Of a stretch of 64,000 nt of DNA, positions 1 through 53,122 are shown piece by piece (the stretch's first letter is position 1; each line of letters begins with the position of its first letter). The notes beneath the pieces were generated by a model, which did not search any database, had not been told where the DNA came from, and was given only the letters and a program-made list of their open reading frames with translations. The stretch is from positions 124,001 through 188,000 of the IMG/VR virus record IMGVR_UViG_3300008117_000011, one strand, 5' to 3'. The position numbers and the translations under genes were made by a program.

Positions 1-556
1 GTGTTCCGCCAGTTATAGTTAAAAGTGCTGTCCCATCAAAAGTATCAACACCAGATGGGTGAATCACATTACAAAACACATCCATAGGAAATATTGTAAG
101 AACATCACATTCATTTCTAGGTTTAATAGTAATTGGTTTTTTGGGACAAGCATTATTAATACATTTACCACCATTACTAACAACAATACTTCCTTCATAA
201 TCAAAATATGGTTTTGTTTTTGCACAAAAATTAAATGTCTGACCTGTTGGTAAGATACCATCAAATAAAACATTGTTACAATTTACATATTGTGTTGTTA
301 TTGGTTCTGATGGTGTTTTAAATGTGTAACAATTACAATCACAATCACAACTACCACTATAATCTATTGTAAATGTTGTTGTACTAACACAAGTTCCTGA
401 ACTATAGTAGTTTACATAAAAACATTCACCACTTAAGACTTCTGTGTTTGTGATATCTAAAACGACATAATTATTTACAAAACCAGACAGATTTGGTTCG
501 TTACTATAAAATGGTGTAAGAGTTCCATTACAAGGATATAGTTTATAACATGCCAT
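1..556 (-). CDS. Cys-rich virion/fibre-associated protein, 3'-truncated by the window edge; SprB-like repeat begins near the edge
   Basis: Not in the ORF track. Hand translation from ATG at 556 gives MACYKLYPCNGTLTPFYSNEPNLSG...CDCDCNCYTF...NECDVLTIFPMDVFCNVIHPSGVDTFDGTALLTITGGT, open to position 1. TATTTAT motif at 568-574. Confidence 0.75.
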   Translation of the reverse strand, partial: MACYKLYPCNGTLTPFYSNEPNLSGFVNNYVVLDITNTEVLSGECFYVNYYSSGTCVSTTTFTIDYSGSCDCDCNCYTFKTPSEPITTQYVNCNNVLFDGILPTGQTFNFCAKTKPYFDYEGSIVVSNGGKCINNACPKKPITIKPRNECDVLTIFPMDVFCNVIHPSGVDTFDGTALLTITGGT

Positions 557-575
557 TCTTTTTAATAATAAATAA

Positions 576-1556
576 TTACTTTTTTGTTTTTTGAATAAAT
601 GATTTCATTAATTCAATATACTTTATTGTTGATGAATTTTTATCAATATAATCAAAATGATTTTCATTTTTAATTAGACATTCAATTGGGTCAATATTTA
701 TGTATTCACCTTTATAGAATTTTGTTGATTTTAAGTCGTCGGTTACTCCTGCCATATGAAGTATTGGGCACTTTTCATATTTTTCAATGTTATCAGTTGC
801 CCAAGAAAAATTAAGATCCTTAATAACACTTGTTTTGTTTCCATTAAGCCAAAGGTTCCAAAGAAGCGACCACATTTCTGCAGTCCAAAATTGTATCTGC
901 CCTGGATTGATCGGGAACCTTTTTTGATATGAGTGCATTTGAAAATACAATGGTGTTGAGTCTTCGTATATTTTATACCACAACTTGGAGTCAGTATTTT
1001 TTACAATATATTGGCCACCCCCAGAATTTTCTTGATTTTCTTTTATCACATTTACATCAATTCCAATAACATCAGCCATTTCACTTAATAGTTGTCCTTT
1101 CTTAGAATTTTTATGTTGCCTTTCATATCTATCACAACAGTCAATAATGTAATTATATCCAATGTATCCTATGGTGTCTGAAAGGTATGATATATCATCT
1201 TTTAATAATGTTTCAAAATCTGGTAATTCTCTAAAAATAATATCAGCATCGTGAAGAAAAAATGATTTACCAAATTGTGGATATTCTTCAAGCCATCTTG
1301 AAATTAAATATGGTTTTATACTTGGTATATATGTTTTTTTTCTTCTACTATCTTCATAGAAATGTATATTAACCCCAAGATTTAAAAGTTCTTTAGCACC
1401 TTCGGATGGTTCTTTTGCTCCGTGGACCATTGCTAGTATTACGTGAATATTTTTTGGGTTAATTCCTTTTTCAATAAAATTATGAACATATAACTTTATT
1501 TGCCAATGAAAATAAGAAACATCTGGTTGTGCGGATACAAAAACTAAATCTTGCAT
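576..1556 (-). CDS. Glycosyltransferase, GT-A fold, HPAT/SERGT1 (GT95/GT96)-like
   Basis: Ordered motifs YFHWQ, YIPSIKPY, hydrophobic strand + DAD (FFLHDADIIFR), GYIG, GGGQY, WTAEMWS and ILH. These parallel plant peptidyl-serine galactosyltransferase/Hyp arabinosyltransferase motifs as I recall them. Confidence 0.7.
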   Translation of the reverse strand: MQDLVFVSAQPDVSYFHWQIKLYVHNFIEKGINPKNIHVILAMVHGAKEPSEGAKELLNLGVNIHFYEDSRRKKTYIPSIKPYLISRWLEEYPQFGKSFFLHDADIIFRELPDFETLLKDDISYLSDTIGYIGYNYIIDCCDRYERQHKNSKKGQLLSEMADVIGIDVNVIKENQENSGGGQYIVKNTDSKLWYKIYEDSTPLYFQMHSYQKRFPINPGQIQFWTAEMWSLLWNLWLNGNKTSVIKDLNFSWATDNIEKYEKCPILHMAGVTDDLKSTKFYKGEYINIDPIECLIKNENHFDYIDKNSSTIKYIELMKSFIQKTKK

Positions 1557-1615: not shown

Positions 1616-4600
1616 TTAGTTATTTAAATTCTCAAGAGCCGATATTCTATTTTTTAACTCATCTATTACTACTTGTTGTTCTTTTATAGCTTCAACAAGT
1701 AATGGTATCATAGCGTCAGTATGAACACCTTTGTACTGATCAACTTTATTTGTAAATGATAATCTAGGTTCAACAGATTCAACTTGTTGTGCGATAAATC
1801 CAAATCTTTCATCATTTCCACCAGCTTTTCTATCTTTCCATTGATATGTAACACCACTTAGTTGTAATATTGTATCTAAACCACCAGTTATTGGTTTTAT
1901 ATTTTCTTTTAGTCTTTCATCTGATGTATTTGTTGTTAACTTACCTGTTGCATCTATTCTAATGTCATTAACAAAAGCTGAAGTACCCACACTTCTTAAT
2001 GCAATATTTTCAGCTTCTAAGTAATTAACAACATATACCACAGGTTCATTTGTCCCACTAAAAACTGAAGTTGTATCACCAGATGGTAACAAATATAATG
2101 TGTCATCAGTACCACTTGTTCTAAAAATAATTGGACCATCAGATTCATTAACAATAAATAAAGTAGCGTTTGTTGACCCAGTACTAAAATTAGCTTCAAG
2201 AGCTGAGTAGTTACTATATTGAGTTAGTCTAGTATTTAAACTTGGTGATGTTGTACCATTATATAACCTAATATTTGATCCTGCTGACCCAGTTCTTAAC
2301 TGAATATTATTTTCAATTGACGCTGTTTCTGAGTAAATACCAAGTTCATTATTTGGTCCAACTGATAAACCTGGTATAAGACTACTATAAGTGTTATTTG
2401 GTCCTCCAATTCTTACATTTCCGGTTATTCTTGTGTTACCACTAACGTGTAATTTTTCACTTGGTGTTTCCAATCCAAGTCCAATAAAGCCTTTGCTACT
2501 ACCATTACCATCAATAAACATATGTGCGGTAGATAAATCTGGTGTTGTTCCAGCATAAAATCTTATATTATCAAGTGGAACCGATCCAGATGGTGCGTTT
2601 ATAATATTTAAGTTTCTTGTATTTGCTCCGGCATATAAAAACATATCACCATTACCACCATAACCCGGGAATATGGTATCAGTCCAACTTCTCATTCCAA
2701 CGCTACCTCCAGTTGCTGGTTGGACAAAACTATTAAAGGCTATGGTGACATCAAATCTTGGTATTCCAGTACTTGAGAAAATATTAAACCTTCCTCCTGT
2801 TGATGTTGGATCATAGTAAAATTCACTATTTGTTCCGACAACTTGTAAGGGATATTGTGGTGAGTCGGTACCAACACCCAATCTTTCATTTGCTAAGTCA
2901 ACTGTAATCCCACTATTGGACCCAAAATAAACATTTCCTTCATCTAAAGGATTTATATTTAATGGAGAACAAGAATGAATATTATAAACATATAAATCAT
3001 CAACACAATCTGTCGGTGACCCAATTGTTGTCGCAGATATTGTTGTTGCTGATAATCCACCAGTAAACGTTGTTGTTCCAGTTACAATACCACCACTAAA
3101 ACCACCGGTTGTTCCAGTAACAACAAATCCATTTACATCAATTCCTAAATTATTAATTGATGTACCAGTTCCAAGTAAAGATATGTTTAGATATGGTACA
3201 TAAACGGTATCGTCTGTTGTACCAGTTATATTTTGACCACCAATAACCACAGACCTATTACCAGATACAAGTGAATCGCTTGAGTGTATAAATGATCTAC
3301 TACCATTTGCAATTGATTGGTAACCACCAGCGTGTGAAGCATTTCCAGATGCTATTGTAAAATATCCTTCTGTATGTGAAAATGATCCATTCGCTATTGT
3401 TGCATAACCCTCAGCATGTGAAGCACCCCCGCTTGCGAGTGTTGTAATACCCTCTGCGTGTGCCCAAGTAGTTGTCGCACTTGTTTGTTGACCTTCTGAA
3501 TGTGAATAATCACCAGAGGCTGTTGTTTGATAACCTTCTGAATGTGAATAATTACCGGATGCTGTTGTTTGATAACCTTCTGCGTGTGATGTAATACCAT
3601 TGGCAATTGTTAAACCACCTTCTGCGTGTGAACCAAGTCCGGCTGCGGTACCACCACTTATAATATTAAAACCATCATAATAACCACCTTCAGCGTGAGC
3701 TCCTTGATTTGCAGCCAAAGAATAATACCCTTCAGCGTGTGAACGAAGAGTACTGGCAATTGTTGAGTCTCCTTCTGTGTGTGTATAATCACCAAGGGCT
3801 TGGGTAAAAAATCCTTCAGCATGTGAATAATCTCCTTGTGCAATTGTTGAGAGTCCCTCTGCATGTGAAGCGATACCAGTTGCTGTTGTAAGTTGTCCTT
3901 CGGCATGTGAATTATCTCCAGTGGCTATTGTTCCAGCTCCTTCGGCGTGTGACCCAATTCCGGTTGCCGACCCACCACTAAAATAAAAAAATCCATTAAA
4001 ATATCCACCTTCGGCGTGTGATGCAAAACCTCCGGCGATTGACTGGTATCCTTCAGCATGTGATGTGTCACCGCTAGCTATTGTTGAGTCACCTTGTGAG
4101 TGTGAAGCGACACCAATGCTTGTTGTACTAACTCCTTCTGCGTGTGATGTAGCACCATTGGCAATTGTATTATACCCCTCGGTGTGTGATCTTAAACCAA
4201 ACGCACTTGTAGATTCACCTTCGGCGTGTGAAAAATCACCTCCCGCAATAGTTGAATACCCCTCGGCGTGTGCGCTATCACCACTAGTTGTTGTAGAACT
4301 ACCTTCCGCATGTGATGAGGCACCACTAGTTGTTGTAGAACTACCTTCCGCATGTGAAGCAAATCCGGTGGCGTTTGTTTGAATTCCCTCAGCATGCGAA
4401 TAATTACCTTGTGCTATTGTATTGGCTCCTTCAGCATGACTTATTATCCCTAATGCATATGATGTATCACCCTCAGCGTGACTACCTTGTAAAGCTATTG
4501 TTAAAACACCCTCAGCGTGTGAATAATCACTAGCTTGTGTTTGATAACCCTCAGTATGTGAATAATCACCAGCTACAGTCTGAAACCCTTCGGCGTGTGA

Positions 4601-4918
4601 AGTAAGCCCGCTAGCAATTGACCCATCGCCACTTGCTGTTGAGTTATTACCTGATGCTAATGTTTGGTTTCCCCAAGCAACAGCCCTATCACCAGTGGCA
4701 TCAAGTCCGGTTGGGTTTACAGCTTTTATTGAGTCTACACCAGTAGATCCTGATGTCCAATAATCGGTTGGGAATATGACATTACTCAAAACTTGGCCGA
4801 TGCTTGCTTTATATGATGAGCCAGCTGGATTTTGTGATGTATCACCAGTTATGACAATGTGAATTAAATCATTTAATGTTACGCCAGTAGCTAAAGTCCT
4901 ATCGGTAAGAAATGCCAT
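1616..4918 (-). CDS. Trimeric tail fibre/adhesin with YadA-head-like SHAEG repeats and C-terminal peptidase S74 intramolecular chaperone
   Basis: About 30 repeats of a ~14-aa unit SHAEGxxTxAxG. C-terminus has TSDERLKENI...GVTYQWK...GFIAQQVE...LLVEAIKEQQ followed by a coiled coil. Confidence 0.88.
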   Translation of the reverse strand: MAFLTDRTLATGVTLNDLIHIVITGDTSQNPAGSSYKASIGQVLSNVIFPTDYWTSGSTGVDSIKAVNPTGLDATGDRAVAWGNQTLASGNNSTASGDGSIASGLTSHAEGFQTVAGDYSHTEGYQTQASDYSHAEGVLTIALQGSHAEGDTSYALGIISHAEGANTIAQGNYSHAEGIQTNATGFASHAEGSSTTTSGASSHAEGSSTTTSGDSAHAEGYSTIAGGDFSHAEGESTSAFGLRSHTEGYNTIANGATSHAEGVSTTSIGVASHSQGDSTIASGDTSHAEGYQSIAGGFASHAEGGYFNGFFYFSGGSATGIGSHAEGAGTIATGDNSHAEGQLTTATGIASHAEGLSTIAQGDYSHAEGFFTQALGDYTHTEGDSTIASTLRSHAEGYYSLAANQGAHAEGGYYDGFNIISGGTAAGLGSHAEGGLTIANGITSHAEGYQTTASGNYSHSEGYQTTASGDYSHSEGQQTSATTTWAHAEGITTLASGGASHAEGYATIANGSFSHTEGYFTIASGNASHAGGYQSIANGSRSFIHSSDSLVSGNRSVVIGGQNITGTTDDTVYVPYLNISLLGTGTSINNLGIDVNGFVVTGTTGGFSGGIVTGTTTFTGGLSATTISATTIGSPTDCVDDLYVYNIHSCSPLNINPLDEGNVYFGSNSGITVDLANERLGVGTDSPQYPLQVVGTNSEFYYDPTSTGGRFNIFSSTGIPRFDVTIAFNSFVQPATGGSVGMRSWTDTIFPGYGGNGDMFLYAGANTRNLNIINAPSGSVPLDNIRFYAGTTPDLSTAHMFIDGNGSSKGFIGLGLETPSEKLHVSGNTRITGNVRIGGPNNTYSSLIPGLSVGPNNELGIYSETASIENNIQLRTGSAGSNIRLYNGTTSPSLNTRLTQYSNYSALEANFSTGSTNATLFIVNESDGPIIFRTSGTDDTLYLLPSGDTTSVFSGTNEPVVYVVNYLEAENIALRSVGTSAFVNDIRIDATGKLTTNTSDERLKENIKPITGGLDTILQLSGVTYQWKDRKAGGNDERFGFIAQQVESVEPRLSFTNKVDQYKGVHTDAMIPLLVEAIKEQQVVIDELKNRISALENLNN
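3270..4700 (-). repeat. Coding tandem repeat array, mostly 42-bp (14-aa) period, within the fibre gene
   Basis: 37-bp identical copies at 4279-4315 and 4321-4357. Further near-identical 42-bp-spaced copies around 3491-3582. Confidence 0.9.
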
Positions 4919-5264: not shown

Positions 5265-7469
5265 TTAGGTACATGCGACACAGGCAATATTATAATCTAT
5301 TATTAGATTTAATTTTATATTTTCATCATTTAATAAATTATATTTTTGTGTTGAGCAATTTTTTTGTATTTCTTCACAATCATTTGTTAGTTTGATTGTA
5401 TTGTTTTCAAAATCAATAATTATATCACCAATTCCGTTAAATTGATTAAATAAAGATTTTACAGTTTCGGACCATAAATAATCTGTTGGGTAATCATTAA
5501 GTGCTGTTGATGTGTAGAACAATTCTTCTTTAATCTCGGATCCAACAACTGCCTGAGCTGTAAATGTAGCACCGGTTACAATACAATTTGTATCACCACT
5601 AGTTAAATCATAAAACCCTTCGCTATACATTTGAAGTATTCCTCTTTTTGCTAGTGCTTTGGTGTTTTCAAAATAACTTTCACATATATTGAAAATCTCG
5701 TAACTTGAGAACAGCTTTGTCCCATTTAATAAAATGGACGTTGTTTTAAAGCACCCACCACCATCTGTTATTGTAAGTTCATATGTTCCAGATGTAAGTC
5801 CTGTCACTGTTGTTCCAGTTTGTCCGGTTATTACTGGATTCCAACTAATTGTAAATGGTGGTGTACCATCTGTTATATAAATATCAATCCTACCATCATT
5901 ACCTAATGCTGGACTTATTGTTGTGTATATATAATCAACACAACTTGATGGTGCAATAAATAAAGTTTTTGTTTGTGTACAAGGAAGTAAATCATTATCG
6001 GTAACCTCTAGTGTGTAAGTCCCAGGGGCTAGATTTTGGAAATATCCAATGTTTTGAGTTACGTTTACAAGTGATGGTGATGGTCCTGTAAGTTTATATG
6101 AAACTGGGAGTGTTGCCCCAGTTGATATTGATGTACTTATTTCTCCATTATTTAAACCAAATGTTGTGTCAATTGTAATCGCACTTATTGTAAACTTATC
6201 AACATTGTTTACCGATGTTGTTCCACTATAAACACACCCACCTTTATCTATTGTAATAATGTAATTACCGCTTGATACATTTAAAAATGTTTCAGATAAA
6301 CTACCATTTGGTATCATACTAAAACTTCCATTTGATCCTGATAATGTATATGAATATGTTCCTGGGGTTCCTGCACCAATATTAACCCCTATACTACCAT
6401 TGTTGTTACTACAATTTGAATTTGTTGTTGATATTGTAACATTATTAAATGAGTTTGGCGTTACAAGTGTTGTTGATTTAGTGTCGGTACATAGTCCGGC
6501 GTCAGTTATTGTGACTTCAAAAAATCCACCAGAAAGACCTGTAAAAGTGTAAGATGTTGCAAAATCAACATATGATGCTCCGTTTGACCCATAGTAAAAA
6601 TATGGTGCCGTTCCACCGGTTACTATAACGGTGACCTCTCCGTCACCTAAAAAACAAGATGGTGGTTGTGTTACAAGTAGTGACCCAATACCAACATTTG
6701 GTACTTTATTTACTTGGAATGCTTTTGTAACTTCACATCCATTTGTGTTTGTAACTTTAACGGAATACAATCCTTGTGTTAAACCAGTAATTGTCGTTCC
6801 GGTTTGACCATTTACATTACTTAACCAATCTATTGTGTAGGCACTTGTAGGTGTTGTAAGTCCGGTTATAAAAATTTTACCCTGACCTTCAGTTGATATA
6901 CAACTTGAGTCGTTTACAATATAGGCACCATAGTCAAAAGTTGTTGACGATTTTACAATTACAGAAGCACTTTTACCAGAGCAACCACCTCCATCATCAC
7001 CAATTATATAATATGTATTTGGCAATAAGTTAGTGAAAACATAACTATTTTCACCAGGAATTACTGGCCCTACAGATATGAGATTATCTGAAAAATCATA
7101 TAAATTAAGTGTTATAGCACCATATGAACTTGGTGTTGTTCCAGTTATTGACCCGTTTGTTAGATTACAAGTTGTACCTTCAGCATCAATACTTACTGAG
7201 GTTCCTGATGATATATAAAATGGTACAACAATATCATAAGTTGAGGCGTCAACTATAGTTAAAAAATATTCACCAGGTGGTAATCCACTGGTTTGATAAA
7301 GAGTATAATCAGTTGATGTATATGCTGAAGAAGGTAATAATCCAGTTGTTGTTGGTCCTTCATAAACCGCCCACCCAGGTGTATTACCGGTAAATAAAAG
7401 GTCAATCGCACCGCTACTCGTAAAAGAGCAATCCCCAGTTAATGATATGTTTATTAAAGTAATTGACAT
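5265..7469 (-). CDS. SprB-repeat (Ig-like) virion protein
   Basis: Repeated units such as C...DG.I.V..TGGTAPY.Y....G.......FTGLSGG.Y.VTITDAGLC, the pattern of Bacteroidota SprB repeats. Confidence 0.75.
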   Translation of the reverse strand: MSITLINISLTGDCSFTSSGAIDLLFTGNTPGWAVYEGPTTTGLLPSSAYTSTDYTLYQTSGLPPGEYFLTIVDASTYDIVVPFYISSGTSVSIDAEGTTCNLTNGSITGTTPSSYGAITLNLYDFSDNLISVGPVIPGENSYVFTNLLPNTYYIIGDDGGGCSGKSASVIVKSSTTFDYGAYIVNDSSCISTEGQGKIFITGLTTPTSAYTIDWLSNVNGQTGTTITGLTQGLYSVKVTNTNGCEVTKAFQVNKVPNVGIGSLLVTQPPSCFLGDGEVTVIVTGGTAPYFYYGSNGASYVDFATSYTFTGLSGGFFEVTITDAGLCTDTKSTTLVTPNSFNNVTISTTNSNCSNNNGSIGVNIGAGTPGTYSYTLSGSNGSFSMIPNGSLSETFLNVSSGNYIITIDKGGCVYSGTTSVNNVDKFTISAITIDTTFGLNNGEISTSISTGATLPVSYKLTGPSPSLVNVTQNIGYFQNLAPGTYTLEVTDNDLLPCTQTKTLFIAPSSCVDYIYTTISPALGNDGRIDIYITDGTPPFTISWNPVITGQTGTTVTGLTSGTYELTITDGGGCFKTTSILLNGTKLFSSYEIFNICESYFENTKALAKRGILQMYSEGFYDLTSGDTNCIVTGATFTAQAVVGSEIKEELFYTSTALNDYPTDYLWSETVKSLFNQFNGIGDIIIDFENNTIKLTNDCEEIQKNCSTQKYNLLNDENIKLNLIIDYNIACVACT

Positions 7470-10468
7470 TATTGATTACACAAAATATTAAAGTTTATTC
7501 CAAGATTTATTTCAAAAACATCAAATTTATCATATGGGACACAATTATTATTATAAATTGTAACAACTTCACGATCTAAATCAATAAAATAATAAATCCC
7601 ACTTGTTTCTAAATTATCAAGTGCTGTTGATATTGCTATAATCCACTCTTCGTTTGTTGGTTGACTGGTATATCCAAATGTATTTGTAACAAACTCTGTT
7701 GTAAGTGTTACACCATTTAATTTTATTTCTGCATACCAATTAACATCAAGTGTATTTAATAAACAAACATCTGGTGGTATACTATTTGATTCTAAATAAT
7801 TATTTAAAACAACAGCCAAGGCCCCGCCAAACGATTCAACCATAGCATTTGATGAATTCCAAGGATAAAGACCGCAATTTAATTCTTGTAAAGGACAATC
7901 GTAAGCGAATAACTGTGTTGTAAGTTCACAAGGGTTACAAGGAACCGGAACAATTTTACAACCAAATTGTCTACGCCAAACAAATTTTTGTCTATGAAAT
8001 ATTGAATTTTCAAGTCGTACTCCTGTGTTCCAGATTGTTGTTGCTGGAACCATTTGTTCAATAAGTCTTACCCAATATGTTCCAAGACCATTTACATAGT
8101 CAATCATTGTCTGATATGTAAAATTATCATTTGGTACATTTATTGCTTGTCCCGACTCAAGGTACTTCCAATATATTGATTGTAATGTTGGGTATCCACC
8201 GGTTTTTCCATCTGTGATAAATTGTCTATTTCTTACATTTATCATATTTCTCCAAAAAGTCTGTGCAAATTCAAAAAATGTCTTTTCTTTTGGTTTTGGG
8301 TTAATTTCTGTCCAATCAATCCCTCCTCTTCTTGGGTAGTTACTTATTGGGTCTGGATTACAATAAGTTGGTTGTACGTAGTTAAGTCCCTCATTTGGAA
8401 TTGGGTAATTATATGTTCTTGACATTGTATAAACATCATATAATAACCCAAAACTAGGATTTAACATTACGTCAACATTTTTAACATTTAGAACTAAACA
8501 TTCTTCACCAACATAGTAGTAAGCATTGAATCCTCCATCAGAATTTACTCTTAAATTCTTTTCAGTATCGGTCCAGCTTTTGTTGTTATCAATTGTTCTT
8601 CTTAATCTGAAACCAAGATCCATATATGGGAAGTTTCTATATCTGTCAAGATATTCTTCACCATAATTAAATGGAAGTAATGTTGTCTGATAGTCTGGAT
8701 TTGACCCAGTAAAGACACTTGTTGTAATGTCAACTTGTTCAGGCATTCTATGTTGAGGTGTTGATTCAAACCAACCCCCTCCAATTTGGAAGTAGTATGA
8801 CTCGCTGTCAACTGGTGTACTAGGACATCCAATATTATCAATTGGGTACTCACTTTCCGTAATGCTAATATCAGTTGTTGTTGTACTATATGTCACACCA
8901 CTATATTGAACCCCCATAATTGAGTAAACATCTGCCGAATCTAACACTGGTGTTTGTTGGACATAGGTTCCTCCAGATATCTGAACGTATTGTCTACCAA
9001 AATCCGCTAAATTAATTCTTTGGTCTGCGGTATATATATACTCATTAAAATCAACTAAAAAATCTGGAGCTCCAATAAGTCTTAAAAGAATTTCAATAGA
9101 TTTTCTTGTTCCTTTTGATTTAAATAGAAACGCCGAATTCAAAACCAAATTTCTATAATATTGGTAATTCAATTCTTCTGGTGTTTGTCCAACTGGAACG
9201 CCACTAAAATCACTTTTTGCCGGTTTAAAAATTGTATCTAATAATTCGGTTTCAGTGATTGGTGAGATATTTGTACTCCACCCAAGTGTCTGTGCTAAAT
9301 TTTTTAATAATTGTGATGGAATGTCGTTTTGTACATTATAATTTACAGAATTCATCATACTTAACGCATCAATGAATTTTTTTGTATTATCAAAACTTCT
9401 TCCGTAGATTTGTAACATTTTTTCCACCTTCTTGTCAAGAACATCAAATTCTTTTAATGATGGTGTTGTTAAAAACCTTGAAATCAAATTAGTTTTATAC
9501 TCATCAAAATTTACGGTAAACTTATTTATTTCCGCAAGATATAAATCAAATGCTGAAGTTCTTATATCAAGATTCCAAACACCATCTATTGGGAATGTAA
9601 CTGTTGTATATTTGAATTTATATGTCCCATCTTCTTGTAGTTCCGGTACTTCAAAATATGCAGTATATTTTGGTCTTATAGATCTATTAAGGAGAAAATT
9701 TTCAATGTTATCAAAATTATCATTAAAAACTTTATTAACATTTATTTCGTTTGGTCTTACAATAAAATTAACATCAGTTGTTGATAACCCAGAAAATGGA
9801 TTTCCAGCAACATATACTTTTAATATAGTGCTTGATGGTGTTGTTGGTACAATATCATTTATTGGGTATTCAACCTCGTTTAAATAAATTGAGTAATAGT
9901 TATAATTTTTTTTCATATTCCTCAAGTCTGAAACGTATATTTCAGATGCTTGAGTATTTTTATCAGCGTTTGTTGTAAAGTCAATTCCAAAAGGATTACT
10001 AATAGCGTCTAGTAGAATTTCAAGTTCTGTTTCATTATCTACTGAATCGTATATAATATTTTGTGCTGTGTTACCCTCAACATAACCAGGTCTAAATTTA
10101 TTAACCTCTAATGCCGCTGGAAAATAATTAATTATCCTTTGTATTGAGTTTGAGAATCTTAATTTAAGCGACCCATAAATTGTTGTGTTTGTAATTTCAC
10201 TTAAATCATAATTTGGGTATATCTGAAAATTATTTGCAACAATCATTCTTGACTGCAAATCATTTGATAGATTCATTGTGTCAAGTGAGATTGGGTCCGA
10301 GAATGAACCTATTTCAAAGTTTCTATCTTGTTTTTCAGATAATGAAGATGTGAACTGAAAATTTCCTTGTGTAAAACCTCCTCCATCAACTAATTGAAAG
10401 CCGACTAAGTTATCAGAAAATGAGCCTTGACCTGATGCTTGTGGTGGACAAGTAAATTTATTTGACAT
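7469..10468 (-). CDS. Baseplate wedge protein (P2 gpI / T4 gp7-like)
   Basis: LLKNLAQTLGW...YYRNLVLNSAFLFKSKGTRKSIEILLRLIG (KGT motif). TAATG coupling with both neighbours. Confidence 0.7.
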   Translation of the reverse strand: MSNKFTCPPQASGQGSFSDNLVGFQLVDGGGFTQGNFQFTSSLSEKQDRNFEIGSFSDPISLDTMNLSNDLQSRMIVANNFQIYPNYDLSEITNTTIYGSLKLRFSNSIQRIINYFPAALEVNKFRPGYVEGNTAQNIIYDSVDNETELEILLDAISNPFGIDFTTNADKNTQASEIYVSDLRNMKKNYNYYSIYLNEVEYPINDIVPTTPSSTILKVYVAGNPFSGLSTTDVNFIVRPNEINVNKVFNDNFDNIENFLLNRSIRPKYTAYFEVPELQEDGTYKFKYTTVTFPIDGVWNLDIRTSAFDLYLAEINKFTVNFDEYKTNLISRFLTTPSLKEFDVLDKKVEKMLQIYGRSFDNTKKFIDALSMMNSVNYNVQNDIPSQLLKNLAQTLGWSTNISPITETELLDTIFKPAKSDFSGVPVGQTPEELNYQYYRNLVLNSAFLFKSKGTRKSIEILLRLIGAPDFLVDFNEYIYTADQRINLADFGRQYVQISGGTYVQQTPVLDSADVYSIMGVQYSGVTYSTTTTDISITESEYPIDNIGCPSTPVDSESYYFQIGGGWFESTPQHRMPEQVDITTSVFTGSNPDYQTTLLPFNYGEEYLDRYRNFPYMDLGFRLRRTIDNNKSWTDTEKNLRVNSDGGFNAYYYVGEECLVLNVKNVDVMLNPSFGLLYDVYTMSRTYNYPIPNEGLNYVQPTYCNPDPISNYPRRGGIDWTEINPKPKEKTFFEFAQTFWRNMINVRNRQFITDGKTGGYPTLQSIYWKYLESGQAINVPNDNFTYQTMIDYVNGLGTYWVRLIEQMVPATTIWNTGVRLENSIFHRQKFVWRRQFGCKIVPVPCNPCELTTQLFAYDCPLQELNCGLYPWNSSNAMVESFGGALAVVLNNYLESNSIPPDVCLLNTLDVNWYAEIKLNGVTLTTEFVTNTFGYTSQPTNEEWIIAISTALDNLETSGIYYFIDLDREVVTIYNNNCVPYDKFDVFEINLGINFNILCNQ

Positions 10469-11376
10469 TATCCAGTAATATTATTAAAAGCTTTACTAAA
10501 ATCTATATTTGTTCCACGATCCTGTCTAACCTCATAAAGAAGTGAATTAAATTGATCACGAATTTCATATAAATTGTATTGTTTATATATGTTATTTTGT
10601 GTATCGTAGATTGTATAAATACCATCATCAATTGACTTGGTTTGATTACCATAAAGTGCAATTGCAAGTGTTGAGATATCTTGATCAACTATTTCAATCT
10701 CCGTTGTTATTGGATTGAAGAATGTGTTTGTTATTATGATATTCTGGTTTGGTTGTCCAATAAATGGTGTTGCGCTTGGTTTGTTTGTTGGTGATGTTGA
10801 TGGTGATAATGTACAAAAAATTAAATTTGTTGCGTTTTCAACATATCTATATCTAATAACTTTTTGTGATGTATTTGTTAAATTTTGATAAATTGGTTCA
10901 CAATAAAATGATGAGGTAATTAATCTAAAGAAATTAGGAATTTTTGTACCATTATCATTTAAATACTCAACTCTAAAACCAACAAGTCCCTGGTTAACGA
11001 ATTTATTTTTAAATTGTGTTGGTACATTTGTAATATCAATTACAATTCCTTTAACATTTGGTAGTGCTGATAAAACACCACAATCTGTAATTTTTGTTCT
11101 AATTTCTGCCGGTCTAATATAAAGTGTATATATTCCAAGTTTATTAAAAACATCAGCGGGTAATTTTAAATTATATAAACCACCAAGAATTTCAACACCA
11201 TTGTTTCCTCCGGTATTTGTATTATGGAAATATGGTCTTAGCACATTTTTTGCGTCAAGTTTTGTTAACAAAAAATTATTTGTATCGTCTCTTGATGGTG
11301 TATAATTTAGTATTATATCAACATCTTCTGGTGATACATCTGCTGGTCTTATGGTTCCATATGTTCCCGTGGCCAT
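10468..11376 (-). CDS. Hypothetical structural protein
   Basis: 302-aa ORF with TATTTAT upstream (11409-11415), translationally coupled to the wedge gene. Confidence 0.65.
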   Translation of the reverse strand: MATGTYGTIRPADVSPEDVDIILNYTPSRDDTNNFLLTKLDAKNVLRPYFHNTNTGGNNGVEILGGLYNLKLPADVFNKLGIYTLYIRPAEIRTKITDCGVLSALPNVKGIVIDITNVPTQFKNKFVNQGLVGFRVEYLNDNGTKIPNFFRLITSSFYCEPIYQNLTNTSQKVIRYRYVENATNLIFCTLSPSTSPTNKPSATPFIGQPNQNIIITNTFFNPITTEIEIVDQDISTLAIALYGNQTKSIDDGIYTIYDTQNNIYKQYNLYEIRDQFNSLLYEVRQDRGTNIDFSKAFNNITG

Positions 11377-11421
11377 ATTGTTTAGTTTTTACTTTTGTTT
11401 ATCTTTTTATAAATAGTGTAG

Positions 11422-28255: not shown

Positions 28256-29277
28256 TTGTTTGTTTTTTTTGACTTGTTTCTAAAATTTGTTTTTTCTTTT
28301 CTTGATAACTTTAAAAATGGTTTTAAAAAATTAACCCAGGCTTCATCCCCTTTGGGTAAAAATTTAAAAAGTCCATCTTCCATCATCATTTTAATTAGGT
28401 TTCTATGTCCCCTTCCGTCTGGATCCAATGACTCTGAGTAGTATAACCTAACTAATTCTCTACCTTCTTCTGAAATTAGTGGGTTTGCAAGGTCCACTAT
28501 TTTTTCATTGATAACAAAGAATTCATCTCCAAATATCCCCTCTTTGGTTTTTCCGCTGAGTAGATTTTTTAAGGCAACATTTTCTTTTTGTTCTTTAAGT
28601 AGTGTCTCAGCCTTTGTTAAAATATCGGTATATTTTAATTCGGTATCAAGTATTTCCGGGAAAAACTTAACAAAAGTTTTTTCTCCTAAATAGAAAATCC
28701 CATCAATATTATCTGACATATCACCAGATACTATTTTAAATGTTTTAACATTATAATGTGGAATTTCAATATCGTACATTTTAATCATATCACCTAGTTT
28801 GTAATACTTTTTTTGTTGTGGTGAATAGATTGTTACTTTTTCTGAAATTAATTGTGTTAAATCCCGGTCAGATGAAAAAATTGTTTTTTCCTCATCCTCC
28901 GAGATTTGACAGTAGTAAGCAATTAAATCGTCAGCTTCAGATTGTTGAACTTCTAATTGTCTAACAAACATTTCCTCAAGATATTCCTTAACTCTTTGTT
29001 TTTGTTTTAGAAATGACTGTTCTTTAAAGTCTTCGTCTGTTTTTTGTTTACGATTTAGTTTGTATTTTGGGTATATAATTCTTCTTTGTGAAGATCCGGT
29101 TTCACTATCCCAACAAACAACAATTTTATTGTAATTGTTTTCTTCTAAAAATCTTCTTAAGGTGTTTAAAAAGTGCCAGATACCTCCAACATGCTCGCCT
29201 TTGTTAAAGAAGTCTCTGACACCAAAAAATCCTATTTTAAGAAGGTTGTTACCATCAACCAGTAAGGTCTTAGTCAT
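28252..29277 (-). CDS. 5'-3' exonuclease / flap endonuclease (T4 RNase H, PolI N-terminal type)
   Basis: LLVDGNNL, YPKYKLNR, EADDLIA, SSDRDLTQL, GDMSDNIDG...GEKT. Confidence 0.92.
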   Translation of the reverse strand: MTKTLLVDGNNLLKIGFFGVRDFFNKGEHVGGIWHFLNTLRRFLEENNYNKIVVCWDSETGSSQRRIIYPKYKLNRKQKTDEDFKEQSFLKQKQRVKEYLEEMFVRQLEVQQSEADDLIAYYCQISEDEEKTIFSSDRDLTQLISEKVTIYSPQQKKYYKLGDMIKMYDIEIPHYNVKTFKIVSGDMSDNIDGIFYLGEKTFVKFFPEILDTELKYTDILTKAETLLKEQKENVALKNLLSGKTKEGIFGDEFFVINEKIVDLANPLISEEGRELVRLYYSESLDPDGRGHRNLIKMMMEDGLFKFLPKGDEAWVNFLKPFLKLSRKEKTNFRNKSKKTNK

Positions 29278-30292
29278 TTAAAATTTCATTTACTGGGTTT
29301 GACAATACCGGTTCTTTTTCTGTTATATAGTCAGTTAAAAACTCACTAAAGATTGCTTTCATAACTGGAATACAAATTGAGTTTCCTGCTAATGCTACGT
29401 GTGCTGTGTTTGAAAGTGAGGTTGTTAACATTTTATCTATATCTTCTTCCTGGACACCCATAAATCTATAACCCTCTCTTGCTGTAATTGTTCTTATTCT
29501 ACCATCTCTTGTCATAATTTGTGGTGAACCACTTGTTGTTAAACAAGGGGAACAGGCTTCAATTGAGTATATTCTTCTAGCTTGATCATATTTAACATCA
29601 TCTCTTCTTGCAACAAGTTTACAAATAGAATTTACTTTAGGTGTGTTAGGTGTTGTTGGACAATTAATATATAATGAAGGGTCAACAGTGTCTTCAATGT
29701 ATGGTTCCATTGGGACTCTAGTTTTTTTATAGTTGTCAACATTTAACATTTTTTGTTTTACAACTTCTCTATCTTCATTAAGTACTGAAATCATAAAAAC
29801 CCTTTCTCTGTTTTGTGGACATCCAAAGTCTGCACCATTTAATAATCTCCAATATGATGTATATCCAAGACCTCGTAAAAAATAGATATGTTTTTTAAAA
29901 TTTTCGTAATGGTTTTTTGATACTAGGTTTTTAACATTTTCCATTAACAAATATTTTGGTCTATTTGCCGACAATAGTCTTTCAACATCAAATAATAATC
30001 CACTTCTTGTACCTTCTTTAATCCCTCTTTGAACACCGGAAATTGAAATGTCTTGACAAGGAAATGAATATGTTAATAAATCACACTCTGGAAAGGTATT
30101 CTCGTCAACCTTTGTAATGTCACCCAAGTTACCATTAAGTGTTGTGTGCAACGCGTCATAACACTCATTTGCTTGTTTAAAATTATCACAATTTGCAATT
30201 ACTTCGTGGTCTACACCAATATATTTAAGTGCAAGTTCTTGAGTTCCGTAACCGGAAAATAGAGATACAACTTTTAATTTATTCTTATTCAT
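29270..30292 (-). CDS. Orphan C5-cytosine DNA methyltransferase
   Basis: Motifs I (LFSGYG), IV (SFPCQ), VI (MENVKNL), VIII (QNRERVF) and X (AGNSI). Confidence 0.93.
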   Translation of the reverse strand: MNKNKLKVVSLFSGYGTQELALKYIGVDHEVIANCDNFKQANECYDALHTTLNGNLGDITKVDENTFPECDLLTYSFPCQDISISGVQRGIKEGTRSGLLFDVERLLSANRPKYLLMENVKNLVSKNHYENFKKHIYFLRGLGYTSYWRLLNGADFGCPQNRERVFMISVLNEDREVVKQKMLNVDNYKKTRVPMEPYIEDTVDPSLYINCPTTPNTPKVNSICKLVARRDDVKYDQARRIYSIEACSPCLTTSGSPQIMTRDGRIRTITAREGYRFMGVQEEDIDKMLTTSLSNTAHVALAGNSICIPVMKAIFSEFLTDYITEKEPVLSNPVNEILND

Positions 30293-49786: not shown

Positions 49787-52700
49787 TCACACATCCTCAA
49801 ACGAAGCACCTGTTGGTGTGATGTAGAAGGTAATGTCAATAAATTCAAGAGATTTTGTAGGTTTGATATAGATTTTACCAACAAGTTGGTTTTTATCTAA
49901 ATCTTCTGTACTATTAGAAACTGTTACTCTAAAGTCATACAAACCTCTATCTCTTCTAATTGCATCAAGAATTGGGTTAACCGCATTCAAGAAGTCCTGT
50001 CTTACTTGTTGATCATTTTGATCAAACAATAGCCTTACAGAAACCGCAGAAATCAACTTACGAGCTTGTAGTAACAATCTTCTTACGTTAATTCTGTCAA
50101 GAGCAGATTCTCTTACTTGTAGAGTTTTGTTACCCCAGATTACAGTACCAACATCAGAGAAAGTTGCAATTGGGTTAATTCTACCAAGGTAAAGAACATC
50201 TCTATCTTCTTGTGTCAACTTCTTACGAGCTTTAACCGCATTAACAATACCACGAGTATAACCAGCGGCCGCAAACCAAGGGAATGCAATGTTATCAGTT
50301 AACGCCAAGTTTCTTGTAACTTCAGCTGTTGGTGGTATGTAGATTTGTGTATTATTCACAGTATCTCTTGTTAATACCCAAGGATAATAAGTTGCTGTGT
50401 AGTTAGAATCAATTCCTGTTTCTTCTAACAAGTCAACAGCTTCTTGTGGGTAAATTAAACCATCAGATTCAGTTGTTGTTGCTTGGAACATATTAAAGTC
50501 TGGCATTGTTGTTACATAAAGTGAGTCAGCTCTTTCGTTCTCAATCATATCAATTGTACCCTCAACAAGACCGGAGTTATTGTAAAGATCAATACCCGGT
50601 GTTGTAAATACATTGATGTTAACAGCTTCAGGATTTGCAAATGTTCTAATACCTAACATATAAGCATAGTAATCTGTGTTACCGTATTCCACACTACCAT
50701 CACCGATAGATATTTGTTTGAATAGTCCGTTTCCAGTACCATTAGGGTATCTTGTTGATGTGCACGCTCCTTTTAAGAAACCAGATCTACCAAGAGTAAA
50801 CTTATCTGCGTTTGTTCTATATTCTCTATAGATGTCCCATCCGTCAAATCCACCATAAACAAATACTGTGAATTTTCTTGAGTTTAATCTGTAGTAAGGA
50901 TTCTCAGGGTCAGTTGGTTCAGAAGAGAATGATGTATTACCAACCTCAAACGCTGGAGTTCCAGATGATGCGTAAACACTTGAAATTGTTACAGCACTAG
51001 CGAATTGGTCCATATGGTATCCTTTTGTTTGGAAATCCCATTCAACACCTTCACCAGTACAAAGATTAAGAGGTCGTCTTTTTCCTTTATATTGGAAGAA
51101 ATCACTATCGTAACCCCAGAATGATGAAAGTCCAAGATATGTTCTTCTTACGTTATCCCCAGGACTTGTAAATACATCGTCAATTCCGTTAGATAATCCA
51201 AATGGTGGGTTATAAACAACTTCACCAGGTATATCATATTTAGTTTTGTAAACTGGGAATGGAGATGTTACTCCCGGATATTCTCTAAATGTATAACCTC
51301 TAAATCCACAAGGAAGAGCGTCAATTGGTGCGTCCTCATTCATCTCTATTAAAATGTATTTAGAATTCAACACGTATTCACCATCAAGAGTTCCTACTTT
51401 TTTAGCGATGAAATTATTTTCTTGTGGGTTCATAGAACAATTTGTGAACTTTTCAAGAACTGTTGGGTTAGCATCACTATCAAAATAATCTCTAATCAAT
51501 AATGTGAATGTTAAATTATTAAATGAAATATCAGAAATTGACACTTTAATTTCAGTGTTTGCTGAATTACCATCAGAAATGCTATAAACTTTAAATAAGT
51601 TGAATACTTTATTACCTCTAACTTCAGAAACAACCCAAGGTGTTACAGGGGACTGGAATCTATCTAAATACCATCCAATTGTATTAGGGTCATTTGCTTG
51701 AGCTTCTTCTGTTGTTACAAGTTCAGAACTTAATCCTCTAATAAATCCTTTATTCCATCCATAACTTAAAAGAGTTTGGAAATTTTCTTCAACCATAAGT
51801 GGTGTTTGTAATCTTGGTTTACCAAAGTTACTTTTCCCAAATACTTTATTGATATTTTTAGAGTCGTTTGAAGACAATGAAACCTCAAAGTCAAAATCAG
51901 TACCAACTTTATTTGTCGCATTGATTGCAAATTTAGCGAAAGGATTTTTCTTAACTGAAGAATAAACACCTGTCATATCTAAAGTAACATCAGTAACACC
52001 AGTGATTTCGTAAACTGGGTTAACATCAGTACTATAAGTTGAGATACCTCTTGATCTTAAAGTTACAACAACTAAGTCATCATATTCAGTGTATGATGTT
52101 CCAGTGTAATAATAGATAACACCAGTAACATTACCAGAATAGCACTCATTTACAATTGGGGCTGTTGGTGTTGGCGTTGGTGGAACTGGAGTTAAAGTAA
52201 CACAAGGATCTGGTGTTGGTGTTGGCGTTGGTGCCGCACTTGTTGTTGTGGTTGTAACCGGTGTTATATTTGTTAAATCCGTTACTGTTGTAAAGAATGA
52301 ATAACCAGTATAAAGACCTGAACCAACATTGTCCATAAGGGCATAATACCAAGCATCGTTAAGTGGTGATGAAGTGTCTAAAGATTCAAAAGGAATTGAC
52401 TCAACACCAAAAACATTTGTTTCTTGTGTATATCCTGTTGTACTTAAATATGTGTAATCACTTTCTGGTATAGCACCAAAATAGTAAACAACCTCATCTT
52501 CCGCAGTTGATGGGTTACTACTTGTTATCACATCTGAGACCATTAAACTAATTTGGTCATCAAGAGTTGTGATGTCACCATCTAACTCTTCATATTCCTC
52601 AGTCAACATACTTTCAATGTCAGACGGAAAAGCACCTAAGAATAATACGTTAGTTGGATTGAGTGTACAAGCACTAAAAGGAATTGAGAATGACAATTCT

Positions 52701-53122
52701 TTTTTAACAACACATACTGGTTCACAATCAACTGTTACACCACTTAAACAAAAATAATCCAATGTTTTAGGATCTAAGTTAGCTTTAGTTACAATTGACC
52801 AAGATGGACCCGCATCATATCCGGATAATCCTAATATTCTTGTTACAAATAATTGATTTGATTGTTGTAAATATGACTTAGCAATATATGCCGCTTCATA
52901 TTTAGGGATTTGTGTATTTACAAATTTTTCTGGTGAAGTTCCACCGAAATAAACTTGGAATTCGTCGTAGTTCTTAACAAAGATTGGTTCAAATGCTGGA
53001 CCCCTTAAAGTCTCACCGGCAATACCTAATGTGGTAACACCAACACTTTGTGCAACGAAACTCAAATCTACTTCAGAAGTGTACACACCTGGTGATACAA
53101 AAACTTTACTGTTAGTAGCCAT
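49787..53122 (-). CDS. Contractile tail sheath protein (gp18-like) with large inserted domain
   Basis: FVSPGVYTSEVD N-terminus; YYPWV, WFAAAGYTRG, INPIATF...WGNKTL...LDRINVRRLL and IKPTKSLEFI. Confidence 0.95.
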   Translation of the reverse strand: MATNSKVFVSPGVYTSEVDLSFVAQSVGVTTLGIAGETLRGPAFEPIFVKNYDEFQVYFGGTSPEKFVNTQIPKYEAAYIAKSYLQQSNQLFVTRILGLSGYDAGPSWSIVTKANLDPKTLDYFCLSGVTVDCEPVCVVKKELSFSIPFSACTLNPTNVLFLGAFPSDIESMLTEEYEELDGDITTLDDQISLMVSDVITSSNPSTAEDEVVYYFGAIPESDYTYLSTTGYTQETNVFGVESIPFESLDTSSPLNDAWYYALMDNVGSGLYTGYSFFTTVTDLTNITPVTTTTTSAAPTPTPTPDPCVTLTPVPPTPTPTAPIVNECYSGNVTGVIYYYTGTSYTEYDDLVVVTLRSRGISTYSTDVNPVYEITGVTDVTLDMTGVYSSVKKNPFAKFAINATNKVGTDFDFEVSLSSNDSKNINKVFGKSNFGKPRLQTPLMVEENFQTLLSYGWNKGFIRGLSSELVTTEEAQANDPNTIGWYLDRFQSPVTPWVVSEVRGNKVFNLFKVYSISDGNSANTEIKVSISDISFNNLTFTLLIRDYFDSDANPTVLEKFTNCSMNPQENNFIAKKVGTLDGEYVLNSKYILIEMNEDAPIDALPCGFRGYTFREYPGVTSPFPVYKTKYDIPGEVVYNPPFGLSNGIDDVFTSPGDNVRRTYLGLSSFWGYDSDFFQYKGKRRPLNLCTGEGVEWDFQTKGYHMDQFASAVTISSVYASSGTPAFEVGNTSFSSEPTDPENPYYRLNSRKFTVFVYGGFDGWDIYREYRTNADKFTLGRSGFLKGACTSTRYPNGTGNGLFKQISIGDGSVEYGNTDYYAYMLGIRTFANPEAVNINVFTTPGIDLYNNSGLVEGTIDMIENERADSLYVTTMPDFNMFQATTTESDGLIYPQEAVDLLEETGIDSNYTATYYPWVLTRDTVNNTQIYIPPTAEVTRNLALTDNIAFPWFAAAGYTRGIVNAVKARKKLTQEDRDVLYLGRINPIATFSDVGTVIWGNKTLQVRESALDRINVRRLLLQARKLISAVSVRLLFDQNDQQVRQDFLNAVNPILDAIRRDRGLYDFRVTVSNSTEDLDKNQLVGKIYIKPTKSLEFIDITFYITPTGASFEDV

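Follow-up and report, generated by a model that had tools for sequence, protein, structure and literature searches.

What is a 326-aa glycosyltransferase-like protein doing between two virion genes of a large phage, and on what does it act? An earlier note, made from the sequence alone, had pointed out a DxD protein with plant HPAT/SERGT1-like motifs encoded inside the fibre operon of a 64,000-nt stretch of viral DNA (IMG/VR record IMGVR_UViG_3300008117_000011, positions 124,001 to 188,000; hereafter the window), and proposed that the phage glycosylates its own fibre, sheath or baseplate proteins. To answer these questions, we examined the protein, its family and the genes surrounding it in the 224-kb freshwater jumbo phage containing the window and in other phages carrying homologues.

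The 326-aa protein and its relation to named families

The presence of the gene was confirmed. The ORF starts with ATG, and the motifs YFHWQ, YIPSIKPY, HDADIIFR, GYIG, GGGQY and WTAEMWS occur in its product in this order. In alignments of 45, 22 and 49 homologues, the W of YFHWQ, the Y of YIPS, both D residues of the DxD motif (D103 and D105), the G and Q of GGGQY, and W/M/W of WTAEMW were found to be invariant or nearly so, as were H267 and K282. D105 and H267 are invariant in all three alignments, while D103 is invariant in one and conserved at 90% or more in the other two. The features of the region are listed in Table 1.

Table 1. Coordinates of the gene, codons of its conserved residues, and neighbouring and candidate acceptor features in the window
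Coordinates	Strand	Feature	Basis
1..556	-	First 185 residues of the gene immediately downstream, encoding a 620-aa SprB-repeat, Hoc-like, Cys-rich protein (3.7% Cys, 24% Ser+Thr) that runs off the window	Gene map; SprB repeat; Hoc-like PHROG hit
576..1556	-	326-aa soluble glycosyltransferase (GT) with a predicted GT-A fold (phrog_4417 family, remotely HPAT/GT95-like); proposed initiating Thr-O-glycosyltransferase for virion proteins	ORF and motifs; family profile; AF2 model; PDB matches; hydropathy; synteny with poly-Thr proteins
756..758	-	Codon for H267, presumed third metal ligand	Invariant in three alignments; role inferred from GT-A enzymes in general
1242..1250	-	Codons for D103-A104-D105 (gat gct gat), the DxD motif, presumed metal and nucleotide-sugar binding site	Sequence; three alignments
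1616..4918	-	Upstream tail fibre (1100 aa, 23% Ser+Thr) with SHAEG-type repeats and a C-terminal self-cleaving chaperone domain; weak acceptor candidate (two SSTTTS motifs at residues 193-212)	PHROG tail-fibre hits; Peptidase_S74
29270..30292		C5 DNA methylase
49787..53122	-	Tail sheath (1111 aa) with about 800 extra N-terminal residues	phrog_23 tail sheath, E 1e-53; Phage_sheath_1C
52157..52276	-	Thr5 plus Pro/Thr-rich insert of the sheath (residues 283-322), the best candidate acceptor tract inside the window	Tract scans

Searches of Pfam, NCBIfam and PDB sequences with the single protein gave nothing useful; the only PDB hit (AAR2) was a spurious match to the low-complexity C-terminal region. 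However, the protein matched phrog_4417, a phage family of unknown function, over nearly its entire length (E 4.7e-68; residues 6-319 against profile positions 3-290 of 293). This family spans 845 clusters at 50% identity, nearly all of them viral. Longer homologues are fused to other GT domains (PF11397, O-FucT, GT7C) and to F5/8-C domains.

The AF2 model of the protein was of high confidence (pLDDT 97.4, pTM 0.94). A Foldseek comparison retrieved 220 PDB chains at E<=0.001, the top ones all being GT-A enzymes (GT8, GT24, GT6 and GT31), with a probability of 1.0 for WbbM, glycogenin, XXYLT1, UGGT and GTA/GTB. No membrane segment was detected: the maximum 19-residue Kyte-Doolittle hydropathy is 0.76, and there is no N-terminal hydrophobic segment. 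The TM-scores are only 0.39-0.47. The earlier note had held that best structural matches of the GT8 type would count against its proposal. Such matches were indeed obtained in the PDB, but they are uninformative, because the TM-scores do not exceed 0.47 and no HPAT or SERGT1 structure appeared among the PDB sequence or fold matches.

The resemblance to HPAT is real but remote. HPAT is the nearest named family by language-model (Atlas) features, with 22 of the top 100 named clusters carrying this domain and the best scoring 0.96 (206/256 shared features). It is also the nearest by predicted structure (TM 0.73-0.75 to HPAT clusters, against 0.62 to GT8), although the structures compared were those of a close relative and not of this protein. 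At the sequence level, one family member reached 21.9 bits (E 1.3e-4) against the HPAT model PF23452, over profile positions 9-230 of 307, just below the Pfam threshold of 23.9 bits. The window protein itself gave no hit at E<=10, and only 3 of 94 members gave any HPAT signal (3 of 45 in one set, and none of 49 further divergent members), so the sequence-level link remains weak.

A search of PDB with the family profile gave a single sub-significant match, to the GNPTAB catalytic domain over the DxD region (E 0.33). GNPTAB also appears in the Foldseek list, and two divergent members touch Pfam Stealth_CR2 at E 0.018. It is therefore conceivable that the enzyme transfers a sugar-1-phosphate rather than a sugar, like Stealth/GlcNAc-1-phosphotransferase enzymes. 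However, all of these signals are below significance, GT8-, GT24- and GT6-type sugar transferases score better by structure, and the nearest named family, HPAT, is a sugar transferase. We consider this alternative unlikely.

Poly-Thr tracts in the neighbourhood of phrog_4417 genes

To identify possible acceptors, the position of the homologue was first examined in individual phages. It is located directly after the major tail protein gene in phiFL1A, phiCTP1 and SA2, and directly after the major head protein gene in R3.3. Each of these proteins ends in a poly-Thr tail. In phage nattely, in contrast, the adjacent capsid protein has no tail.

The analysis was then extended to 252 loci. An initial tract definition (8 of 10 residues Ser/Thr) missed the T6 repeats of the window phage itself, and therefore the analysis was re-run with a run-based definition. 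A tract was found at position -1 in 135/247 cases (55%), at +2 in 62/240 and at +5 in 50/208, compared to 17/1230 (1.4%) at distant positions. Greedy clustering was used to define GT lineages, since single-linkage clustering chained them into only 11 groups; of 22 lineages, 20 have a tract within two genes. The tract-bearing neighbours fall into 52 unrelated families, almost all encoded on the same strand as the GT, and in capsid- and tube-sized proteins the tract is always C-terminal. It should be noted that many loci are related to one another, and that the ORF calling and tract definition were our own. No tract at all was observed in 22 of the 252 loci, though several of these are short.

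In two small phage genomes scanned whole, phiFL1A and R3.3, the only poly-Thr proteins are the major head and major tail proteins, with the tract at the extreme C-terminus in both. In a reciprocal test performed on the phiFL-type tail-tube family, 12/12 proteins with the poly-Thr tail were accompanied by the GT, and 15/15 without the tail lacked it, with 4 state changes on the tree, of which at least 2 are forced. In the R3.3 capsid family, the one GT-less relative has an Ig-like domain in place of the tail.

These results show functional coupling but not the chemistry, and the transferred group could be a sugar-phosphate or something else. The GT and the tracts might also travel together without being enzyme and substrate, for example if the tracts were flexible linkers, since Pro/Thr-rich linkers are common in fibre-like proteins, and the GT acted on a small molecule or another protein. 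This seems improbable, as in phiFL1A and R3.3 the tails are carried by two proteins encoded 5-6 genes apart and are the only such tracts in the genome, a tail at the extreme C-terminus links nothing, and tail and GT were gained or lost together several times.

Another possibility is that the enzyme modifies a host surface glycan (teichoic acid, LPS or capsule), leading to lysogenic conversion or superinfection exclusion, its location in the virion module being a moron-type insertion. Several carriers are temperate (phiFL1A encodes an integrase and a repressor), and the best PDB match, WbbM, is an O-antigen enzyme. However, this match is weak (TM 0.47), the protein has no membrane segment, and the family also occurs in large virulent-type phages, including this jumbo phage. 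Moreover, this explanation gives no reason for the perfect coupling with poly-Thr tails on capsid and tail proteins, and it is regarded as unlikely.

Candidate acceptors and proposed function in the window phage

In the lineage of the window phage, tracts are enriched at positions +1 (34% of loci, where they are internal) and +2 (28%). The host of this phage is probably a member of the Bacteroidota. Its own +2 gene, located just outside the window, encodes an 844-aa protein with four T6 runs. The other candidate acceptors are the sheath insert and a 350-aa Thr/Pro-rich protein. The tract TTTTTSAAPTPTPTP, which the earlier note had regarded as a candidate acceptor, is real and corresponds to residues 290-304 of the sheath. 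In contrast, the 1703-aa protein proposed in the same note is not a convincing acceptor, as it contains only PKPTPTPKPT and no Thr run. The immediate neighbours of the GT, the fibre and the 620-aa protein, have only weak tracts, and the best candidates are two genes or about 50 kb away.

Extra GT genes are present in the same contig, including PF11397, the family found fused to this GT elsewhere. A cluster of four GT and methyltransferase genes lies 3-10 kb past the other end of the window, and probably extends and methylates the glycan. No 2OG-oxygenase or P4H family was identified among the precomputed Pfam hits, which cover most of the window (except for roughly 33-39 kb) plus about 10 kb on each side, and no arabinose-pathway genes were seen in the regions surveyed.

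Since the window encodes a C5 methylase and the phage has several GT genes, glycosylation of phage DNA (hydroxymethyl- or hydroxy-pyrimidines) as protection against restriction was also considered, as in the case of the T4 glucosyltransferases, the RB69 and DLP3 arabinosyltransferases, or methylase-TET-GT systems. HPATs are arabinosyltransferases, and arabinosylated phage DNA exists (PMC6024577, PMC13326640). However, the known DNA arabinosyltransferases are GT-B/GT4-like, and the DNA-modifying GT-A enzymes form a JGT/TarP-like group with R..DDD..EDY motifs. The methylase is flanked by RecA-like, gp32-like and exonuclease genes, with no TET or hydroxymethylase found next to it. Furthermore, the 38.7-kb temperate phage phiFL1A, whose deposited annotation lists no hydroxymethylase or sugar pathway, carries the GT between tail genes. 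This interpretation also does not explain the poly-Thr coupling, and appears very unlikely.

Taken together, the core proposal of the earlier note, that a phage-encoded GT modifies the phage's own virion proteins, is supported, although no experiment supports it yet and no glycan has been shown on any phage that carries this family. The most likely function, which we hold with reasonable confidence, is that of a cytoplasmic, metal-dependent (DxD plus His) GT-A glycosyltransferase transferring a sugar from a host nucleotide-sugar onto the hydroxyl groups of threonines, and some serines, in poly-Thr tags on virion proteins, before or during assembly. This would give parts of the particle a mucin-like sugar coat, the benefit (shielding, protease resistance, hydration or adhesion) being inferred, as are the acceptor, the donor and the timing. 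In small siphophages of Gram-positive hosts the tags are C-terminal tails on the major capsid and tail-tube proteins, while in this jumbo myophage they are internal linkers. The recurrent acceptor signature is a run of threonines, rather than the Ser/Pro-rich or hydroxyproline tracts suggested by the comparison with plant enzymes.

A broader reading, which we regard as about as likely as not, is that phrog_4417 is the initiating polypeptide Thr-O-glycosyltransferase of a widespread, portable two-part module, a poly-Thr tag plus its GT, grafted repeatedly onto capsid, tail-tube, sheath and fibre proteins by phages of Bacillota, Bacteroidota and uncultured freshwater hosts. Mucin-like coats on phage particles would then be common, and the enzymes would be the prokaryotic-virus branch of the clan that gave plants and algae their HPAT and SGT extensin glycosyltransferases. 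The replacement of tag plus GT by an Ig-like domain in a near-identical capsid hints that the glycan serves the same surface-adhesion or decoration role as Hoc-like domains.

If the family functions as the genomics implies, sugar-coated virions exist in phages of enterococci, staphylococci, lactobacilli, lactococci, clostridia and flavobacteria, and in abundant freshwater jumbo phages. This would bear on the immunogenicity, clearance and mucus adherence of therapeutic phages, on dairy and gut phage ecology, and on the interpretation of disordered C-terminal tails in cryo-EM. A family of more than 800 sequence clusters now labelled hypothetical would gain a function, and the tag-and-enzyme pair could possibly be used for glyco-engineering.

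Comparison with known glycosylation systems

The plant and algal hydroxyproline O-arabinosyltransferases (HPAT, CAZy GT95, Pfam PF23452) and the related peptidyl-serine alpha-galactosyltransferase SGT1 (GT96) act on hydroxyl groups of low-complexity protein tracts, and GT95 is predicted to be GT-A-like. The plant HPATs are Golgi type II membrane proteins (PMC8012813), while the window protein is soluble, and the tracts associated with its family are composed of Thr, not Hyp or Ser.

Retaining GT-A enzymes of the GT8, GT24 and GT6 type (glycogenin, XXYLT1, UGGT, blood-group GTA/GTB, the WbbM GT domain) are the best solved structural matches, with a shared Rossmann-like core and a DxD, and several of them act on proteins or protein-bound glycans. 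With identity of only 8-12% and no sequence-level match, they share a fold class and not a family.

In giant viruses, the PBCV-1 capsid protein glycosyltransferase (bioRxiv 10.1101/2023.12.21.572611) is a virus-encoded cytoplasmic GT-A enzyme that glycosylates the major capsid protein, apparently independently of host secretory machinery. This is a eukaryotic virus with a different GT family and glycan attachment, and there is no poly-Thr tag.

In the literature that we could search, phage virion glycosylation has been shown experimentally only for a few mycobacteriophages, in which it alters antibody recognition, while ten other phages tested by glycostain were negative (PMC12894461). In Che8, Corndog and Myrna (Freeman et al. 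2023, as described in PMC12363180, PMC11600133 and PMC12619734), phage-encoded glycosyltransferases modify the phage's own capsid and tail-tube subunits, with glycans reported at their C-termini, which is also the location of the tags found here in siphophages. The window phage pairs GT genes with methyltransferase domains, as Corndog-type phages do. The enzyme family is different, as judged by tblastn and without a direct profile comparison: of 50,697 phage records searched, 77 were matched, none of them a Mycobacterium phage. Glycosylation by the family described here has not been demonstrated, and its presumed acceptor signature is a homopolymeric Thr run. The host range is far wider (Enterococcus, Staphylococcus, lactobacilli, Lactococcus, Clostridium, Chryseobacterium and freshwater jumbo phages), and in most small carriers a single GT gene is located directly beside the putative acceptor gene.

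Gene content of the window and identity of the glycosyltransferase

The ORF of the putative glycosyltransferase (GT) was confirmed. It starts with ATG and contains, in order, the motifs YFHWQ, YIPSIKPY, HDADIIFR, GYIG, GGGQY and WTAEMWS, as the earlier note had stated. These motifs coincide with the most conserved columns of the family: in three separate alignments, residues D105, H267, G180, W224, M228, W229 and K282 are invariant, while D103 is invariant or nearly so. The upstream gene encodes a tail fibre with a Peptidase_S74 self-cleaving chaperone domain and 23% Ser+Thr. It is built from dozens of degenerate repeats of about 14 residues centred on SHAEG, gives a faint YadA_head hit and matches phrog_25468. 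In a relative (locus L008) the fibre is 700 aa long, so the repeat number varies. The downstream gene, which leaves the window, encodes in full a SprB-repeat, Hoc-like protein with 3.7% Cys. The description of this region as a fibre operon in the earlier note therefore holds.

The window belongs to a 223,671-bp contig from a freshwater metagenome, which encodes a sheath, baseplate proteins, a family-B DNA polymerase, a ribonucleotide reductase and a DnaB-type helicase. It is therefore a jumbo myophage. The GC content of about 30%, the SprB repeats and a Chryseobacterium-phage relative point to a possible Bacteroidota host. The ribonucleotide reductase (phrog_367; a weak Pfam RNR-II_ins_dom hit suggests class II) and the replication genes are located between the baseplate-fibre block and the sheath block, so that the structural genes are split into two modules. 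Three giant ORFs in the structural region have essentially no PHROG or Pfam matches, the only hit being a weak tail-protein match for the 2162-aa product. Interestingly, a protein with Fe/Mn superoxide dismutase N- and C-terminal domains (Sod_Fe_N, Sod_Fe_C), unusually long for a SOD, is encoded next to a T4 gp13-like neck protein gene.

Coordinates of the features discussed in the text
Feature	Sequence	Coordinates	Strand	Length (aa)
Glycosyltransferase	window	576..1556	-	326
Tail fibre (upstream gene)	window	1616..4918	-	
SprB-repeat, Hoc-like protein (downstream gene)	window	starts at 556, leaves the window		620
Giant ORF	window	15159-21176	-	2005
Ribonucleotide reductase	window	24506-26365	-	
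C5 cytosine DNA methylase (PF00145)	window	29270-30292	-	
Giant ORF	window	33193-39681	-	2162
Giant ORF	window	39997-45108	-	1703
Superoxide dismutase-domain protein	window	56809-58890	+	693
Cluster of four sugar-handling genes	L317 (same 224-kb contig, about 3-10 kb beyond window position 64000)	5950-12879		605, 706, 415 and 544
Major tail protein end and +1-frame ORF	L011 (Staphylococcus phage SA2)	6661-6924		87 (+1-frame ORF)
Capsid protein with Ig-like domain	L280 (IMG/VR relative of Lacticaseibacillus phage R3.3)	8001-9116		

Searches of Pfam and NCBIfam with the GT protein found nothing, whereas comparison with PHROGs placed it firmly in phrog_4417, a family of unknown function (E 4.7e-68). 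This family is large, comprising 845 clusters at 50% identity with E<=1e-3, and the Atlas labels its clusters 86-100% viral. AlphaFold, supplied with a 45-sequence alignment, gave an excellent model (pLDDT 97.4, pTM 0.94). A Foldseek search of the PDB with this model returned only GT-A glycosyltransferases, led by retaining GT8-, GT24- and GT6-type enzymes, although these are weak matches (TM 0.39-0.47, 8-12% identity) and a retaining mechanism is only suggested by the nearest folds. The viral structure library added only uncharacterised phage proteins, such as LP65 Orf49 (TM 0.71). The protein has no hydrophobic segment. It is therefore a soluble GT-A enzyme with a DxD motif, an invariant His presumed to be the third metal ligand, and no close solved relative. 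Longer family members, of up to 1369 aa, carry the GT domain fused to PF11397 (GlcNAc), O-FucT, Glyco_transf_7C, F5/8 type C, methyltransferase and sulfotransferase domains, which fits a role in building a multi-step glycan.

The resemblance to plant HPAT proposed in the earlier note was only partly borne out. HPAT (PF23452) is the only Pfam family touched by more than one of 45 family members (3 members), and one member scores 21.9 bits against a 23.9-bit cut-off, aligned over profile positions 9-230 of 307. The Atlas ranks HPAT-bearing clusters as the nearest named ones (score 0.96, 206/256 shared features) and gives a predicted-structure TM of 0.73-0.75 to algal ShK+HPAT and bacterial PqqD (peptide-binding)+HPAT proteins, compared to 0.62 for plant GT8, although the model used in this comparison was that of a close relative and not of the window protein. 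However, the window protein itself gets no hit, and neither does any of 49 further divergent members. We therefore call the enzyme remotely HPAT-like, but it is not a member of PF23452/GT95. GT95 has been described as related to GT96 and as comprising Golgi type II membrane proteins, and is predicted to be GT-A-like.

The possibility that sugar-1-phosphate, rather than a sugar, is transferred rests only on sub-significant Stealth/GNPTAB signals, and appears unlikely. DNA glycosylation is even less probable. The known DNA arabinosyltransferases are GT-B enzymes and the DNA GT-A enzymes are a different group. The C5 cytosine DNA methylase of the window lies among replication genes (encoding a 5'-3' exonuclease, a DnaB-type helicase, and gp32-like and RecA-like proteins), and no TET, dioxygenase or hydroxymethylase was found near it.

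Association of the GT family with poly-threonine tracts

To examine the genomic context of the family, phage records were searched by tblastn. Homologues (33-39% identity) were identified in 77 records, all annotated as hypothetical, with hosts including Enterococcus, Staphylococcus, lactobacilli, Lactococcus, Clostridium and Chryseobacterium. In phiFL1A, phiCTP1 and SA2, the gene lies between the major tail protein gene and the chaperone and tape-measure genes, while in R3.3 it directly follows the major head protein gene. All four of these structural proteins end in a run of threonines, for example a 21-residue Thr/Ser run in phiFL1A gp50. The upstream protein in Chryseobacterium phage MA9V-3 has an internal run, whereas in phage nattely the neighbouring capsid protein has no tail. 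In SA2 the major tail protein ends ...TTTTTTTTP with the codons CCC TAA G, and an ORF in the +1 frame continues with about 50 more Thr/Ser residues, which looks like a programmed +1 frameshift that gives some tube subunits a much longer Thr tag. In Lactobacillus phage Bacchae (Herelleviridae) the GT is not in the main structural module. Even so, it is flanked by a 115-aa 'major tail protein'-type gene, a 168-aa protein ending in a Thr-rich tail, and a 64-aa ORF ending APTTTSTTTSKQ.

A survey of 252 loci was then performed, in which a tract was defined as a Ser/Thr run of 5 or more with at least 4 Thr. Tracts were found in 135/247 ORFs at position -1 relative to the GT, in 62/240 at position +2 and in 50/208 at position +5, compared to 17/1230 at seven or more genes away. 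The +5 peak is the tail-tube gene in phages where the GT follows the capsid gene. Of 22 GT lineages (greedy clusters at 50% identity), 20 have a tract within two genes, against 5/21 control windows (Fisher 9e-6); at 70% identity the figures are 64/80 against 18/57. It should be noted that many of the loci are related to one another, that the ORF calling and tract definitions are our own, and that 22 of the 252 loci show no tract, though several of these are short. After masking of the tracts, the tract-bearing neighbours form 52 unrelated families, and almost all lie on the strand of the GT. In the capsid- and tube-sized families the tract is always at the extreme C-terminus (28/28, 18/18, 14/14, 13/13, 13/13 and 11/11), while in large Cys-rich fibre-like proteins it is internal.

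As whole-genome controls, the complete ORF sets of phiFL1A (65 ORFs) and R3.3 (67 ORFs) were scanned. In phiFL1A only gp45 (major head protein, phrog_544) and gp50 (major tail protein) have such runs, and in R3.3 only the major head and major tail proteins do. The deposited phiFL1A annotation lists no other GT and no hydroxymethylase, while the R3.3 record is annotated only as hypothetical proteins.

To test the association reciprocally, 27 relatives of the phiFL tail-tube protein were compared. Twelve have the Thr tail and all 12 have the GT next door, whereas the other 15 lack the tail and all 15 lack the GT. On a tree of the tube cores the two states are interleaved and need 4 changes, of which at least 2 are forced by well-supported branches. 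Among 39 relatives of the R3.3 capsid protein, nearly all have both the tail and the GT, and two apparent exceptions are a threshold artefact and a frameshift artefact. One close relative (L280, 94% identical core) lacks both and carries an Ig-like (Big_2/Hoc-like) domain at the same C-terminus, which suggests that the glycan tag and the Ig domain are interchangeable surface decorations. Modification of a host surface glycan does not explain this coupling to tags, nor the solubility of the enzyme, and is considered unlikely. It is also doubtful, although possible, that the GT and the tracts travel together without an enzyme-substrate relation.

Candidate acceptors in the window phage and proposed function

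In 80 loci of the lineage of the window phage (57-100% GT identity), tracts are concentrated in the two genes downstream of the GT (+1: 34%; +2: 28%) and are absent at +6 to +8. In this phage specifically, the candidate acceptors are (i) the +2 protein (844 aa), encoded about 1.3-3.9 kb beyond the start of the window, with four T6 runs spaced ten residues apart plus Pro/Thr repeats, (ii) a 350-aa protein further on, with PPTTTTTTSP and Pro/Thr tracts, and (iii) the sheath, encoded inside the window, which has TTTTTSAAPTPTPTP in its large N-terminal extension. The fibre just upstream of the GT has only two SSTTTS motifs. The 1703-aa protein, in which the earlier note had also placed a candidate acceptor tract, has no Thr run.

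Beyond the other end of the window, the contig carries four more sugar-handling genes, encoding proteins with (i) Glyco_transf_9 (GT9) plus Methyltransf_21, (ii) Glycos_transf_1 (GT1-family) plus Methyltransf_24, (iii) PF11397 (GlcNAc) and (iv) HtrL_YibB domains, in the order of the lengths in the table. PF11397 is the family found fused to this GT elsewhere, which links the two genetically. These genes probably encode the glycan-extending and methylating partners of the GT.

Taken as a whole, the computational evidence makes it fairly likely that the enzyme is a cytoplasmic GT that O-glycosylates Thr tags on virion proteins. In this jumbo phage, the other GTs and methyltransferases would extend the glycan.

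To our knowledge, within the literature that could be searched, neither this family nor the use of poly-Thr tails as phage glycosylation tags has been described previously. The known precedent is mycobacteriophage virion glycosylation, which occurs on capsid and tail-tube C-termini; in one study, ten other phages were glycostain-negative. Compared to that system, the one proposed here has a different enzyme family, a distinct acceptor signature and a much broader distribution.
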